Assembly (NCBI GenBank): GCA_964057225.1
Contig: OZ059898.1
Coordinates: 4,464,001 to 4,528,000, forward strand
Origin: Auanema rhodensis
Lineage: Eukaryota; Animalia; Nematoda
Length of the DNA stretch: 64,000 nucleotides
Direction of reading: 5' to 3'
Below are positions 3,051 through 12,534 of the stretch, piece by piece. How positions within the stretch are numbered: position 1 is the stretch's first letter; every line of letters starts with the position of its first letter. Under the pieces are notes generated by a model. The model ran no database searches. It was not told where the DNA came from and saw only the letters and a program-made list of their open reading frames with translations. Position numbers and translations under genes: made by a program.

Positions 3051-4926
3051 TAATATTAAATTATAATTATAATTTCCTCATCTCTATCTTTACTATATTT
3101 TCTTCTAAATTGATCCATATTTTCATTTTATCCTTTCATGAACTGTTTTCTTTATTTGCTACCAAACTGTCCTTCTTCCGTCCTCATTGACGGGGGACGT
3201 CCTCCATTTGCTATTTTACGTACTCTTCCATCTCTCAGGCACTTTCTTTGCTTTTCAATACTCATGTCAAAATCACTAAGAACTCTTCTAGTTGATATTC
3301 GAGTAGATATTCTCCTTTAACGAAAAATATAATTTTCTCCTTTTCAAAAACTTATTTCACGTATGATTTACGTATAGTTCACGTGAAAATATGCCTTAAA
3401 AACAATGCCATTCATCTTAATGTTTACGTGGAGAATGGTTGTGCATTTGGTTTTATCAAGGCTACAGTATATTTTTGTTTCTTCATTTACTCCATGTTTT
3501 ATTACTTTCATTTTCCCTCTGGCTATCTGATGAAAAGGGAGGAGCGCCGGATGTAAGCTCCGATTTTTCTTCTCCCTCTCTCTCGTTTCCCAACTTCTCT
3601 CTTTATATCTCTCTATTTTTCTCTCTTTTTTTCTTTTTTTTTCTCTTATTTCTCTTTCCCTATTCCATAGCCCGGAAAACGCCCCAGTCCTTTTTCAGCA
3701 ACGTCCACGGAGCCCTGTGCGTCCGTAGTTCTTGTCCTTACTTCCGTGTATGATTACCAAAAGAGTTCTAAATAGGAATTCTTTGGAGGTTTAGAAGTGA
3801 AGCATCAAGTTTTTATTTTTAATTAGTACATTCATTATCTGGAATACTTATATCTATTCAATTATCATATGTATCTTATATTCTTAATATTCTGTTGTTA
3901 TATATATCAAATTAATAATAACTATTTATGTATAACTTAACAGATATATTATACCCAACCTTTAATATAAACCTCACAGTCTCACACCTTCTTTCTCGTT
4001 TATTTATTTCCTTTTTTGATTGTACATTACTGAGCTGCTGCTGTAATACAGACGCCTGGGATGAAATCCTCATCTGAGCAACTTCTATTGAAGAATCTTC
4101 TTCAACATTATTTCAAGGCAGAATCTTTTGAACATCATTGCGTATAAACATAATTTGTAGTTTATACATCAGTTCATTTTTGGCTTTTCTGATCCGACAA
4201 CGACCTGTGAACTGAACTGTTTCACGTTTTCACCCAATAGCCAGTCATCTTTTCTCAATCATACATCGCCTGTTCTCTCGTTCAACCCGCATCAACACGG
4301 TAACGGCGAGGACGACAACGGATTATCTTCTCCGCTCTGAAGCAACTGCAGCATCATCAGCAACAATGTGTTGACGGCGATCCATATCCATACACGACCA
4401 CAACCACGTCTACGTACAGCATCAGCATCAGTCAGCTAACAACATTGTAGAGGAAGACCGACGTCCGCCCTCTCTTCTCCTTTCCAATTTCGTTTCTTTC
4501 CTATCGTCTCATCGTTTTGGTACGCTCTCGCACCTCTTTTCGCTCTTCGTGAAATCATCAATCCTCCTGAAGATAGAGAGAGAGACTGTAGGAGAGCATC
4601 AGGACATCCGACGATTAGGACGACATCGAAGACCAGGACGACGACCTTCTTCTATTCATTTTCATTTCAACCAGCTGCTTTCACCGTCTTCCGCTGTTTC
4701 TGTTTCACTCTTACTTCTAATACCATTGAAGTTGATCTCTAGATCATATAATTAGCAATAATTAACCAGTATGATCGTTTATAGTTAATTCTAATTCAAC
4801 TACTTATTTGTTTATGTTTTATAATTTTCTCTCTATCTTTCTAACTTAAATGCTTATCGCTCTTGATATTCGTCTCGTCAAATTTTAAATAGAAAACTTT
4901 GGTTACAGCAATAATCTCCATGTAAA

Positions 4927-7319
4927 ATGAATGAAGATGCTTCAAGAACGTACGAGAAGGATCAAGCAGATGTCTACAAGTTTGACATTTCGACTCATCG
5001 CCTTCCTGGCTCATCCTTTACCAGTTCTGAGTCACCAGAATCTACACCCTCATCACCACTCGTAGAGCCTGATAGTAATACAATATGTAAAATATCAGAC
5101 GGTGTCCCTTCTTCCTTAGCTACTTCTTCCTCATTAATTATTCATTCTTCTGTGCCTGAACCTCGAAAGAAGAAACCGTACAAGGAACTAACACTTGAGG
5201 AAAAAGTCCAGCTCATTCGTTTGGCTGAAGATAATGCTGGTCTAAGTCAAGCTGCAATAGCTGAACGTTATAAGATTGCCAAAAGCAATGTTTGTCGAAT
5301 ATTGCAGCGGAAATCTGAATATTTGACTGCATATGAATCAGCTGGTTTTGCTGGAAATCGCAAGCGAAAGTTGAAAGCAGAAGATCACAAAGCTTCTAAC
5401 TCTTCATCCGTTAGCTTGACTACAACAGCAAACTCATCATCACATCATCACCATGGGCAGCCAACAGTTGCAACACTACTTGATGCACATCAACTTCCAC
5501 ATGTAACTTCCACAGCACAATCATCTATACCATCCAATGGTCTTCTAGTTCCAGCTCCTCTTCCTTTTGACGGTATGACTTGAAAAAGATATTTTAGCAT
5601 GACGAATTTAATCATTCGTAATACATTATTTTAACTAAAAACATAGAATCTCTAATATTCTGATTTTTCTTCTTTTTCTTTCTTTTACAGTTTGCGAACT
5701 TATTTTTTATTTGTTCAATCTCTCATCCAATCATCATTGCACGGCCACAAATAATATCCTTTTTCTTTAACTTTTGTGACATTATGTGTACTTTGACAAT
5801 TTTTTAATTGAAAAAAACAAAAATTGACAAACAATGATCTTTTGTTTTATCTGAAACTTGCGAACTCATAATAAGTAACATTTACTTACATCTAGCAACT
5901 TAACCAAGGTTGTCAAATTATATTAACGTTTTTACAATAAAAAAAACTCAAAAAAACGAAGAAACGACCCAGTTACGTACATATTGTTTCATTTCACTAT
6001 TAGTCTTAACCCCAAATTTTGCTAATATACAGAAAAAGTGATGAAAACTACGACACACATTATGTCCTTGTTTTTTCATAGTATTTTTGATGAAACTTGT
6101 TGACGTTCAATGATCGTTTCCCGGACATTTTTCTTTAAAAAATAAAAATATTTAAAGGAAAAGCCTAATTCTTTATCTCTTTTGTCCTTCACTTTCTGTT
6201 TCCAATTGATTTGAAAATCTGAATGATTACGGAAAAATCTTGGGGGGTCAATCTTGATCATCTTTTTTGGCCGATTGTCCTCCTTAGTCGTTTTTTGTTG
6301 CTTCTTTCTTAAAATTATCTGATAAGTTTTCATCATTTATGAGAACATTTAGAGATAAAAGATAGAAAATAAAGAAAAGATATTAGATTTATATATAATA
6401 ATTTTATAATAAAATATTAAACGAGTGGGTGAAATATAGTTAGAAAAGAAAATTGAATAATCAGGATAAAATATATTATATTATTATCATTTAATAATAT
6501 TGATATTAATTTAAATATTGTCTGATAATGTTGATTAAATGCCATTAAAACTTTTTTTTCATATATTTTCTATTTTTCAAACATTTTTAATATAATTATT
6601 ATTATAAAATATATAATAAATATAAAAATATTTTTTAACTAAAATTATTTATTTTTAAATTTTTTTCAATTTCTTTTGCTTCTTCAATCCAACAATCTCT
6701 AATAGGCCAATAATTTCACTTTCAATCCGTTTCTTATACGTACTGTTTCCTCTTTTTTCAATTTTAACCCCTCTGACCCTCTTGTTCTCTCATTCTGGGT
6801 TATGTCAAGCATGAAATTTTTTGATAAGTTTTCGATTTCAAGCGAAAACTACGTAAAACCCCTGAGGGCAATCACGACATGACACGAGTGATTTCACAGA
6901 AATCTAGTAATCTTTTCTCATGAAAGCACTTTTCTATCAAGTATTTTCTTTTCTAAATTGATTGAGTGATTAGATTAATCAAGATTTCTCTCTAATATTA
7001 CATTAGCGAGATTAAAACATAAAAAAATAAGTTTATAAACATTTTATTTAAAAAATTATAATTTATATATTTCATTTTAGGTAATGAAACTCTTCGAGCA
7101 CATATGTATAAACAACATCAAATTTCTCGAATGTTTATGTGTAGATGTTGTAATTGGGCATTCCCTGATAAAACCAGCCTTCATATGCATATTCAAGTAA
7201 GTAATTATGAGTTTATAAGATCAAAACAGCTTTTTTATTATATTTTAAACAATTTCAAGATATAGTGTTTGATGTGCTTAATAGGAATTAAATCGGTGAA
7301 AGTTTAGAAAGAGAACGAA

Positions 7320-7398
<79 letters not shown>

Positions 7399-9295
7399 AA
7401 ACTTATGTGAAAGCCCGATGATAGGTTTCATCTAGATAGATCTTGGGAAACGTAGATGCTTTCTTGTTCATTCGTCCCAGATAACGAAACTTAAAACTTT
7501 CTAATTTAGTTGTTAAACGGCCTATATCTTATGCAACATAAAGAAACTTTTTCATATAATATATAAAATTAAGATAAAAGGTGAGATGAAGATATAAGCC
7601 TATACTATATATCTAATATATAAATTTAAGAATTTAAATAAAATTAATAGTTAATATTACATATTTATAATAAAGAAATGTATTATACATATATGTATAT
7701 GATTGAATATCCAGTTTCTATGATATACTTCACTTTCTATCCAATCTATCGAGTTGGGGTTAACGTTTATCAACCAAACAGCTAGATGAAGTTTGCTATC
7801 AAACATCTTGTAGTATGATCATCTATGACATCAAAGAATTTCGTTTCCGACACATCTTCTAAACAATAAAAAGATATTTTATAATTATATTATAAGAATT
7901 AAATAATTATAGGCACGAGAAGAAGGAAAATCTGTATCAGTACCTGTGATAGGAAAAGGAATGACAACTGATGGCTTAGCAATTGAAACAACTTCTTTTG
8001 CTCCTTTGCTACAAATTAATAATAATAATACAACAATTAATAATAATAATAATACTCATCATAATAATCATAATAATAATTCCACCTCGGCTCATGTTGT
8101 ACCTGCTTTAGCACCAGGTAATTCCTTTTTCGTTCAAATTATCAATCTTAATCTATATTTCTTATAGGATTATCAGCTGCTCCTCCATCAACATCTTTGC
8201 CTTTCTTTTCCGCAGTTGCTCCTCCAAATAGCTTGCCGACAGGATCGGATGAGCTTGGACGTCTCCGTGAACGTATTATGATCAATCAATTGATGAATCA
8301 ACATGCTTTCAATAATACATTCTCATGGCTTAATCAATTACCTAAGCCAATACCAAGTAAGATTAATAAATCTTTCTATATTAATATTGGATATATGTTT
8401 AAGCAACCCGCCCATTAGATTTATCTCAACATACTGATGCTGATGAGGATTTAGTTATCAATGTGGAAAAAGATATTGATAGTCCAAAGAGGGAAGATGA
8501 CGACGAAAAGGTTTTTACTATTTTCTAAATTAATTTATATTAATTTATTATTTTAGTTGAATATTTCTATCAGTGATTCTGAAGAACCAAAATCTGAAAG
8601 AACAAAAAGAACTGACAGTCCGTGTGAAAATGCCTGTTCATCTAGTACTGTTGGATCTTCACCCTCTCATACAGGCTCTTTACCATCACCTCTGAATGTG
8701 TTTAAAAAGTCTCGATCTTCACCAAGTGCTTTCCATCATCTGGTATGAACTTTCTTTGTTCTATTATATGAATTTTTGTCTTTTTTAAGAATGTAGATTC
8801 CCGGGCATTTATATCGGTGACATCTCCACACGTTTCACCCTCTGAAACGAATTCATCCATTTCTCCAGATGGTCAGGATAGGCCGGCTTGTTATGAATGT
8901 GCATTATATAAAACAAAACTTACAATGGCTGATAACAAATGTCGATATTTGGAAAGTCGAGCCAATACATTACAGGTTAGATTCTATTCGTATAATCATA
9001 TAATTATATTTTGTGATGTATAGGGTGAAACTGTTCGAGCTCAAACACAAACTGCTGCAGCAGAAACAGCTATTCGAGTTTTAGAGAATGATACACGTAA
9101 CTTACGGGAGCATACAGAAAGTATTCAAAGAAAGTTATTAGATTGTCAGGTATATCGTTTATATTAAATGATAAATATACAATATTAATATTACAGGAAC
9201 AAGCATTACGCTTTGTGCAATCTGATAAGACCGCAAATCAACAAGCTGTAGTCTTATTTTTGAATCAGTTAATACAATCAACGATTATTCGTTAA
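4927..9295 (+). CDS. Multi-exon transcription factor: CENP-B N-terminal/psq-type HTH, C2H2 zinc finger, C-terminal CxxC + coiled coil (possibly somi-1-like)
   Basis: Exon 4927-5572 encodes KKKPYKELTLEEKVQLIRLAEDNAGLSQAAIAERYKIAKSNVCRILQRK (HTH). A phase-1 splice to 7081-7196 gives GNETLRAHMYKQHQISRMFMCRCCNWAFPDKTSLHMHIQ (C2H2). Further exons from 7913 with GT-AG introns include CYECALYKTKL...LLDCQ coiled coil and end at TAA 9293-9295. An in-frame TAA at 4912 lies upstream of the ATG. The somi-1 similarity is recollection only. Confidence 0.85.
7322..7394. repeat. (GA)n microsatellite
   Basis: Perfect GA run of ~73 nt in an intron of the TF gene. Confidence 0.97.
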
Positions 9296-10035
9296 AATTG
9301 TATCCATCTTAACGCATTCTCATCAATATGAGGATTGCGTCATCTAGATGGGAACTCAGATATCATTATGAAAATGTTATTTTACAATGGATATCTGAAA
9401 TCATTATCATCATCATTCTATGGATATCATCACTATCGTTCCAGTTGTTCTCATCATCTCATCGTGGTTGTCTTCCAACATTCATATTAACTATGCGCTC
9501 AATTCATTACAACTTATTGAAGCTTCTAAAACCTACACTCCATTTAGAGTCACCTCATTATTTACAAATCACCTCATTCAAAATGTTCTTTCACAAACAT
9601 TCATATTAAGATTCGTAAAATAATCTTATATCTAGTTCCTTCATACAGATTCGATGTTTCTTTCATAACATCAAGTTATGCTTATGAACTATAATAACTT
9701 TGCCGAATTCTTAAACTCAATCAGCTTTCTATCTAATTATCTTCTTTTCAATTCCTTAAATCAGTATTCAATCTATGTGTTTCATATTGAATTGATATTA
9801 TCAATTCTTTACATTCAGATTATTGACGGTTATATTCACTTTGACTACTTGTATTTTGTTTTTTTCTGTGATATCATCATCCTAAATTCATAGCTTTCTT
9901 CGATTATGCTATGTTATCAACCTTACTTTTTTAATTTTTCATTATTATTCACTCTTTATCTTAATTTAGATTAATTTCTATTTTAATATTTCAAACTATT
10001 TTTTTCTTCTTCTTTTTCTTTTTCTTCATATGCAG

Positions 10036-10074
10036 CAGGAGTCTGCTCCAAGTCCGGGGATCGGTGTGCAATAG
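10036..10074 (+). CDS. Putative alternative terminal exon of the upstream TF gene, encoding (Q)ESAPSPGIGVQ*
   Basis: Long pyrimidine tract (~9999-10027), then a CAGCAG tandem acceptor (10033-10038), then a ~55-nt GC-rich island in otherwise very AT-rich DNA. In frame (phase 0) with the donor after 9149. Confidence 0.55.
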   Translation, partial: QESAPSPGIGVQ

Positions 10075-12534
10075 GAGGCCCGACTGAATTATACATATTT
10101 ATACATATATAATATTTAAAGGGTCTAATGTATATAGTATAATATTTTTTATTATTATTATTATTATTATTTATATACTTAATAATATATTTAATAGTAT
10201 ATAGTTGAAAACACTTATCACTACCACTTGTCTTTCGTTTTATCCTTGTAAATGATCATTTTAAAATAATATTATATGATAAAGACTTGTATGTAAATAC
10301 ATAGTATTCAATTGAATTTAATATAATTATTAGAATAACACCTTGTTACTAGTATAGATTCATATCAAAATTCTTTTTTTTTTGTTTCAAGACTCCCAAT
10401 TTGTCTTTCAAAACATTCTTTCTGTATAAATTTGAAGATGAAAATATTGTGATAAATAACCAACTGGCTTTCCCCAGGTGATTCAAATGATATTTCATTT
10501 AAACGAAAGAAGAGAAAAAGGTGAATAGTGACATATGCATAGCATGTTCGAAACTCCCTCCTCCTCCATTTTTGCCTTTTTCATCCTTTCTTCTCCTTCC
10601 TTTGATCCATCCTATCTTTGATTGTCATTTACATGGAGCTAATTTCTAACTTATTATACATATATGAGCCTTACTATATTGTGATGTGTAATATCTTTCA
10701 ATTTAATAAATAATTCTGGTCATTTTGTCTTTATAATATTTAAAAGAAAAAGTTTTTTTTTATAATATCAATATATAAAATGTTAAATGTATAATTCAAT
10801 AGGTAACATTGTTAAGATATAAAAAAAAATATTATTATTATTACATCTATCGAAATGTCATGCCGTATGTGATTGTTTCGTGTATACAAAGGATTTTAAA
10901 TCTCCTTTCGAATATATTGATCAAAAGATAGATATTGGTTTTTAATCCTACAAATAAATTGTTATCATACATTTATCTGTATTTATTGTAATATTTTTAA
11001 TTCTTGAACAACGTTTTAAAGTTCAAGTTCAATGTGTGGAGCTTTTTGCCATTTTGCTTTTCATTCATTTCTTTTAATCAAATGAATACAAATGTTATCT
11101 AAATATAAATTAGATCATTCGTCATTCTAAGATGTCAATTGTCTTTTAAATTTTGAATTTTTTAATGTTTATATCATTCATATATACGTTATATATATAT
11201 ATATTCTCATAGTATGAACATCGTGTGAAACTTCGCCATCTTCGTGTTCTTAAAGGGTGTATCTTTTTTTCTTCCAGATTTCTGTCCATGTATTGTCTAA
11301 AATACTACCGTATGGCATGGCTATTTTAATTCTCCCATAGTTTTTATAACATTGAATGTTACAAGAATGTTTTTTCTGAATACCTTTTTGAAAAAAAACA
11401 TTCAGTGTGCACTAGATTAGTCACATGTCTCCCTTTTATAGTATGAAAAGAAAATTAGTTACTGAACTATTCATGCTTTGACACCCAATGCACTGTTCAA
11501 TCTCGGTTCTTTCTTTTCTGGTAAATGCCTAATACAATTTTCTTTCTGCTCGTTTAACCAACATCATTTCGTAAAATATTAATATTTCTATTAGATTATC
11601 GTTATTAGCTTTGAGAATTACTTTGATAATATGAAACAATGTGAGAATGTTCTGTTATTAGTGTGAGTCTTCAATAACCTTTCATACTTCTTTCGTATTT
11701 ATCCTATTATAAAATTAATAAATATTCATTTATTGAAAATTCAAACCTCAACATTTAGTTTTAACTTAGAGCGTAGATATTTAAGATTTTAAAATTGAAA
11801 GGTGGTTGTTAACTAATAGAGCTAATTTTTTTTCTTTATTTATAATTAGTAAGAAACTAATTAATCTTTTTATTATTTTATAATTAATCTATTTTAGTTA
11901 AATACTATTCCTTTTACTACTACATCAATTTATAATATAATATTGATGTTAATGAAGAATTATATAAGAACATTTATTCTCATTTATTAAATTATCTTTT
12001 TACCTAAATTATGATGGCTTTTCAACATTTTATTTAACAAAAATATCTTTTATTGTTATATCTTTTAAATTTTGTAACATTATTCTTCTTTGTTTATTAA
12101 CATGAAGTTAAACATGTGAATAGTTTATAAATTATTTTTTAGATAATTTCGGGAAAGGTCATTATTGATTCGATGACATGAGCAATTTTATATTATATTC
12201 ACTTAAGAATTTAGTTGCAATAAAGTGCCATATCCTTGTCTCTCTCAAGTATAGCATATCCTTTTTTCTCCCATTTTCTCTTTTTGTTTTTTTATCTTTT
12301 TCTCTCTTTTTCTCTCTTTTACTATCTTTTTTCCTTTATATCTCTCTCTCTCTAATATTCTTTTTTTTTCTTTTTAATTTTTTTTTACTCAAATGTTGGT
12401 ACAATGTATTGCTTTAGTATACAAGTCATAATACTAACTAAAGTATTTTTCTTCAATATTCATTATTCTATAAATTGGTTTGTGCCTCATGTGTTATTAG
12501 TTTTTTCTCATAAAATCTATTTTTAGACATCAAT

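Follow-up and report, generated by a model that had tools for sequence, protein, structure and literature searches.

The locus considered here raises the question of what a short G+C-rich island does in otherwise G+C-poor DNA past the end of a gene. The window, by which the whole stretch of 64,000 nucleotides (nt) of Auanema rhodensis is meant (contig OZ059898.1, positions 4,464,001 to 4,528,000), carries on its + strand a gene extending from 4927 to 9295 that encodes a psq-type helix-turn-helix (HTH), C2H2 finger sequence and a C-terminal coiled coil. The island lies downstream of this host gene at 10039-10086, amid DNA of 10-25% G+C. In a preliminary description it was taken either for a cryptic last exon or for a splice-in module, peptide or RNA, that serves as a shared tag (degron, LC8 site or readthrough hairpin), a proposal with which the orthologous locus, protein tails, motif counts and fold energies all disagree. 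The island is most probably a conserved response element for the microRNA (miRNA) miR-235, situated in a likely long 3' untranslated region (3'UTR) about 770 nt past the stop codon. The basis for this is the complementarity of the site to miR-235, the cognate hairpin encoded by the same genome, the fact that the extended site is unique there, conservation across the full complementary span in Auanema sp. JU1783 (JU1783 in the following) and the retention of the seed match across nematodes. The two features at the centre of the question are as follows.

10051-10073, + strand: predicted miR-235 (miR-92 family) complementary element, from RNAduplex against the genome's own 3p arm, with 22/23 positions kept in JU1783.
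9999-10038, + strand: acceptor-like feature (pyrimidine run and CAGCAG), lineage-specific and not seen upstream of the conserved block in JU1783.

Complementarity of the site to miR-235

miR-235 is the nematode member of the miR-92/25 family, whose seed is UAUUGCAC. The genome of A. rhodensis (181 Mb in 112 contigs) was searched with the pattern TATTGCAC-N4-CCCGG, and one locus with a mir-92/235-type hairpin was found (G000:C3:18568735-18568751, minus strand). The hairpin folds with a predicted energy of -33.7 kcal/mol (L003:174-245) and, on comparison with Rfam, it scored 26.3 bits for mir-92 (E-value 1.4e-4) and 23.1 bits for mir-235. Its predicted 3p arm, UAUUGCACUCGCCCCGGCCUGA, is identical to the Rfam mir-235 consensus arm at 21 of 22 positions and would, as in C. 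elegans, constitute the mature miRNA.

The island contains the 8mer GTGCAATA at 10066-10073, which is a perfect match to the seed UAUUGCAC with an A opposite nt 1 of the miRNA. The letters of the seed site on the target side are GUGCAAUA, and nt 1-8 of the miRNA pair with 10066-10073. Pairing proceeds from there through nt 9-11, which pair with G10064, G10063 and C10062, and through nt 12-17, which pair with the CCGGGG at 10059-10054; nt 19-20 pair with G10052 and A10051, and nt 18, 21 and 22 are unpaired. In total, 19 of the 22 nt of the miRNA are paired, continuously through nt 1-17, and the bulges (U10065, A10060-U10061 and U10053) are confined to the target strand. The energy of this duplex was calculated with RNAduplex as -26.5 kcal/mol, compared with -12.4 ± 2.2 kcal/mol for random contexts containing the same seed site, none of 5000 being as good. 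It was also found that the arrangement CCGGGG-N(0-10)-GTGCAATA occurs only twice in the 181 Mb, once as the antisense of the miRNA gene itself and once as the site in the window; the reversed control gave no occurrence.

Conservation in Auanema sp. JU1783

The nearest homologue of the host gene was found in JU1783, where exon identity ranges from 82 to 100%. When the proposed exon of 12 residues was used as a translated query against the JU1783 locus (L002), a match was obtained about 1050 nt past the JU1783 stop. The corresponding nucleotides, window 10052-10074 (GTCCGGGGATCGGTGTGCAATAG) and JU1783 L002:15989-16011, are identical at 22 of 23 positions, and the JU1783 copy lies about 1070 nt past the stop. 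The single change, from C10062 to U, would convert a C:G pair into a U:G pair, and the duplex predicted for JU1783 has an energy of -23.5 kcal/mol. The exact 20-mer, its variable base written as Y, had no match in a metagenome scan.

About 1.9 kb past the stop in the window was compared with about 2.3 kb past the stop in JU1783 by sensitive blastn. Only two significant alignments were found, which are collinear (9369-9475 and 10052-10165, the latter with an E-value of 4.6e-9), and the remaining UTR is largely unalignable between the two species. The second of these alignments contains the miRNA site and, beyond it, a further conserved segment.

10121-10137, + strand: second conserved block GGGTC..TGTATATAG, collinear with JU1783 L002:16044-16060 and inside the alignment 10052-10165.

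A motif scan of this segment gave a putative Pumilio/PUF-type UGUAUAUA at 10129-10136, about 50 nt past the miRNA site, which we take to be a PUF element on the strength of the UGUAnAUA consensus. Another TGTA[ACT]ATA is present at 10292. The alignment just past the stop, at 9369-9475 (about 107 nt; JU1783 L002:14931-15039), shows 70% identity with an E-value of 1e-8 and may represent a further 3'UTR regulatory region.

The conserved block that carries the miRNA site begins at GTCCGGGG (window 10052), which is 16 nt into the proposed exon, and upstream of it JU1783 has neither a pyrimidine tract nor an in-frame AG. Conservation of an exon at the orthologous locus, which the preliminary description would lead one to expect, was thus not found. 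Its suggestion that the constraint acts on the nucleotides rather than on the peptide was borne out; conservation in JU1783 is at the DNA level and short, and the GTGCAATAG ending is the part that matters.

Retention of the seed match across nematodes

The 1.5 kb past the stop was scanned for miR-235 seed matches in the window and in the orthologous loci of ten other nematodes belonging to clades III, IV and V. A 7mer-m8 or 8mer site was found downstream of the stop in 10 of the 11 orthologues. The 8mer GTGCAATA is carried by the window, Auanema sp. JU1783, Oesophagostomum (in two copies), Nippostrongylus, Brugia and Steinernema, and a 7mer-m8 by Dictyocaulus (two), Mesorhabditis, Diploscapter and Globodera. 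Pristionchus entomophagus had no miR-235 seed match in the scan; there, a neighbouring gene begins about 550 nt away.

Among the nine species first tested, which did not include Diploscapter and Globodera, GTGCAATA was present in six, where about 0.02 occurrences per species are expected, and the next best of 1680 8mers of the same composition reached four. The heptamer GTGCAAT was found in eight of the nine; its 13 sites compare with a null mean of 0.55, and the antisense strand has none. Strongylid sites that share flanks were counted as one lineage; even so, a site is kept in at least five independent lineages. The strongylid orthologues themselves have two or three seed sites with common flanks (…atGTGCAATG… and …aataaGTGCAAT…) at L004:17064-17469, L005:17256-17594 and L010:16981-17516. 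These flank-sharing sites look like orthologous sites that would have been kept since the strongylid ancestor.

Presumed location in the 3'UTR and proposed mode of action

The site is on the sense strand of the host gene, 771 nt past the stop, and its position is collinear in JU1783. No AATAAA, AATGAA, TATAAA, CATAAA or GATAAA occurs between the stop and the site, either in the window (2.3 expected) or in JU1783 (1.8 expected). In the window the first such hexamers just past the site are at 10278 and 10425, and in JU1783 the first is at L002:16065. This pattern is weak evidence for a 3'UTR of about 1-1.4 kb, and from it and the conserved blocks we infer that the site is transcribed within the 3'UTR.

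9296-10300 (end approximate), + strand: presumed long 3'UTR of the host gene, from the gap in poly(A) hexamers and the conserved blocks.

According to the proposed mechanism, Argonaute loaded with miR-235 would bind the host mRNA through the 8mer seed and extensive further pairing. A site of this kind would be of very high affinity and would be expected to bring about repression of the transcription-factor mRNA, with the putative PUF element adjoining it. The pyrimidine tract and the CAGCAG would be lineage-specific neighbours of the site, and the 'peptide' a by-product of reading it in frame.

Several points weigh against this interpretation. Both Rfam scores of the hairpin are under the gathering thresholds, and its mature product was assigned by homology. 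The extended pairing is seen only in the window and JU1783, the other species having plain seed sites with duplex energies of -10.7 to -12.4 kcal/mol. The depletion of poly(A) hexamers is weak when taken alone (p about 0.09 in the window and 0.16 in JU1783), and the acceptor-like signal upstream, which is rare in the window, is left unexplained. The element is real and selected; it is of a known kind and stands out by how nearly complete its complementarity is and by how old the pairing between miRNA and gene is.

The host gene and its normal protein end

The coding exons of the host gene were delimited by domain matches and by comparison with orthologues.

4927-5580, + strand: first coding exon, CENP-B_N / psq-type HTH (Pfam PF04218, E-value 6e-8).
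7081-7197, + strand: exon with C2H2 finger (zf-C2H2 Pfam matches).
7913-8117, 8168-8356, 8404-8510, 8557-8742 and 8790-8975, + strand: further exons, from exon matches to orthologues.
9024-9149, + strand: penultimate coding exon, phase 0 at both ends, with a GT donor at 9150.
9197-9295, + strand: usual last coding exon (EQALRFVQSDKTANQQAVVLFLNQLIQSTIIR and TAA), 97% identical in JU1783.

The proteins used for comparison are those of other nematodes, and no 100% match to the protein of the window was present in the collections searched. The homologues are all from nematodes (Auanema, strongylids, filariae, Strongyloides, Steinernema, Pristionchus, Globodera and others) and are named simply 'HTH psq-type' or 'C2H2-type domain-containing protein'. 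The last exon at 9197-9295 is still recognisable in strongylids, Brugia and Pristionchus. The usual tail (…LIQSTIIR or the variants ATIIQ, TTFLR, ATLLQQ, FTMLQ and KITLV) was present in all 19 of the coiled-coil-bearing proteins that were fetched. The homologue searches, made in protein collections, returned no Caenorhabditis orthologue of the host gene, a result that does not by itself prove absence. Diploscapter has an orthologue, and the gene is otherwise found throughout the phylum; this gap may reflect loss in the lineage or strong divergence.

A few observations on the gene models were made in passing. The finger exon at 7081-7197 opens in the middle of a C2H2 unit, so that at least one coding exon within 5581-7080 is absent from the model. 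A long (GA)n microsatellite of about 40 units occupies 7316-7395 of the window, in an intron of the host gene. Assembled contigs of four sequencing runs from one study (18-21 Mb each), which may be of RNA, contain 54-56% of the sequence words of 4800-10700. In the public annotations of Auanema, Oesophagostomum, Dictyocaulus and Brugia (L002, L004-L006), a protein with only the HTH is split from a zinc-finger/coiled-coil protein, and that of Diploscapter pachys joins the C-terminal part to a ubiquitin/RPS27a gene. These split and fused models are probably annotation artefacts.

The island as an exon or as a structured RNA

All the sequence features first noticed at the island were confirmed. 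On the + strand, a pure pyrimidine run extends over 9999-10027 and is followed by CAGCAG at 10033-10038, and the 100-nt bin at 10000 has a G+C fraction of 0.42 against 0.09-0.27 in the adjoining bins. The frame in phase with the donor after 9149 reads QESAPSPGIGVQ from 10036 and then stops at TAG 10072-10074; the second frame, ...GSVCNRRPD, does end at a stop at 10085-10087. Splicing from the 9150 donor to 10036 or 10039 would make of the island a species-specific alternative last exon or 3'UTR exon, in which the 32-residue tail is swapped for QESAPSPGIGVQ and the miRNA site falls at the end of the frame. The 29-nt length of the run, the tandem CAGCAG and the open frame in phase with the donor speak for such an exon. 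Stretches with 28 or more pyrimidines per 30 nt and an AG within 10 nt number only four on the + strand of the 64-kb window, and in view of this rarity the acceptor-like look of 9999-10038 is not trivial. Set against this, JU1783 lacks the acceptor, the tract and a frame-keeping AG, conservation starts well inside the would-be exon, and the tail that would be replaced ranks, across the phylum, with the most strongly conserved regions of the protein. The bases before the AG (AUAUGCAG) are also a poorer fit to the U-rich acceptors of the host gene's eight introns. The supposed recurrence of such protein ends was not seen, none of 147 database proteins, comprising orthologues and unrelated psq-domain matches, having a C-terminus in GVQ. 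Nor was the motif enriched in the genome: the 15-mer with up to two mismatches occurs 47 times in the 181 Mb compared with 57 for the reversed control, and the 81-nt island is single-copy. An exon of this kind is, on balance, quite improbable. The '...GVQ*' endings that the preliminary description ascribes to other proteins possibly go back to GTG-CAA-TAx, an 8mer match to the miR-92/235 seed that reads V-Q-stop. The seed-match word of miR-92/235 is common in the 3'UTRs of regulators.

Far less credible still is a structured RNA element or a small RNA gene at the island, whether as a stop-codon hairpin, as a minus-strand miRNA precursor or as some other non-coding RNA. As had been noticed, AGTCCGGG can pair with CCCGACT, and JU1783 can form a similar hairpin from a G run and a C run, the seed match lying in its loop; the minus strand, which reads UAUUGCAC...CCCCGG, resembles the miRNA itself. 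The stem was indeed predicted on the + strand, but its energy is not below that of shuffled sequences (z of +0.3 to +1.0), and over both strands the folds are no better than shuffles (z of -0.6 to +1.2, and -1.7 for a 141-nt minus-strand context). For a precursor hairpin, there is no complementary arm in reach on either side. The island has no Rfam match at E-values up to 10; a search of 9000-11000 at this threshold gave just weak chance snoRNA-like (small nucleolar RNA) matches, off the island. The two sequences at hand are too few for covariation. The island was accordingly rejected as a mir-92/235 precursor, there being no partner arm, no Rfam match and no folding beyond that of shuffles.

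Comparison with known sites and with TDMD triggers

Canonical 8mer sites with 3'-supplementary pairing are well known from the 3'UTRs of developmental regulators in animals, the let-7 sites in lin-41 being an example. The site in the window resembles these in its perfect seed match with an A opposite nt 1, in the additional pairing of the 3' half and in the retention of the seed across distant species. Moreover, it is found beside a PUF-type motif, some 0.8-1.1 kb past the stop of a transcription-factor gene in the window and JU1783. It differs from them in that 19 of 22 nt are paired, which is far beyond the usual, and in being the single such site in its genome. A further difference is that the host gene is uncharacterised and has no Caenorhabditis orthologue returned by the searches.

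Pairing of this extent also brings to mind the triggers of target-directed miRNA degradation (TDMD). On this view, the mRNA would pair with miR-235 so fully that the EBAX-1/ZSWIM8 ligase destroys Argonaute together with the miRNA, and the transcript would set the level of miR-235 besides, or in place of, being repressed. This was judged unlikely, although several features agree with it. Like the mammalian and fly triggers, which pair through the seed and the 3' end, the site is highly complementary with bulges, and known triggers are built in this way, from seed pairing together with extensive bulged pairing (duplex energy of -26.5 kcal/mol here). Between the window and JU1783 the complementary span is kept in full, bulged bases included, and the genome has no other such site besides the antisense of the miRNA gene. 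The same miRNA, miR-235, is destabilised in C. elegans by EBAX-1-dependent decay, which is rhythmic and depends on the seed, the trigger being unidentified (PMC11109986). In that study, nt 1-9 and 16-19 were flagged as common to the rhythmic homologues (PMC11109986).

The details of the pairing speak against a trigger. Mammalian and fly triggers pair the 3' end of the miRNA, whereas here nt 18 and the last two nt are left unpaired, and the central nt 9-11 are paired rather than looped out. The sole trigger identified in a nematode, the C. elegans long non-coding RNA tts-2, acts on miR-35-42 and needs just the seed (PMC12324485); the site in the window differs from it by its extended pairing. 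Since tts-2 acts through the seed alone, extended pairing is not diagnostic in worms, and a nematode trigger may not need to pair the miRNA 3' region (PMC12324485, PMC11109986). It also follows from the lack of any Caenorhabditis orthologue in the searches that the host transcript cannot be the trigger in C. elegans. There is a small chance, then, that in Auanema-like rhabditids the host transcript would serve as a natural TDMD trigger or high-affinity sponge for miR-235 and thereby shape its rhythmic decay via EBAX-1. Unlike tts-2, with its seed-only pairing, it would in that case represent a nematode trigger of the extended-pairing type. The extended site is in any event a candidate for asking whether 3' pairing matters in the EBAX-1-dependent decay of miR-235, a question left open by a 2024 study.

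Significance of the proposed miR-235 site

Reading the island as a miR-235 response element replaces an enigmatic 'orphan exon' by a regulatory link that can be tested. It also calls for caution in annotation, as an 8mer site of the miR-92/235 family, when translated, gives V-Q-stop and can be mistaken for a short conserved C-terminus. This miRNA-target pair may stay hidden in the model worm, because the searches brought up no Caenorhabditis orthologue of the host gene. That miR-235/miR-92 sites are kept past the stop in clades III, IV and V suggests that this miRNA-target pair is both old and important in nematodes.

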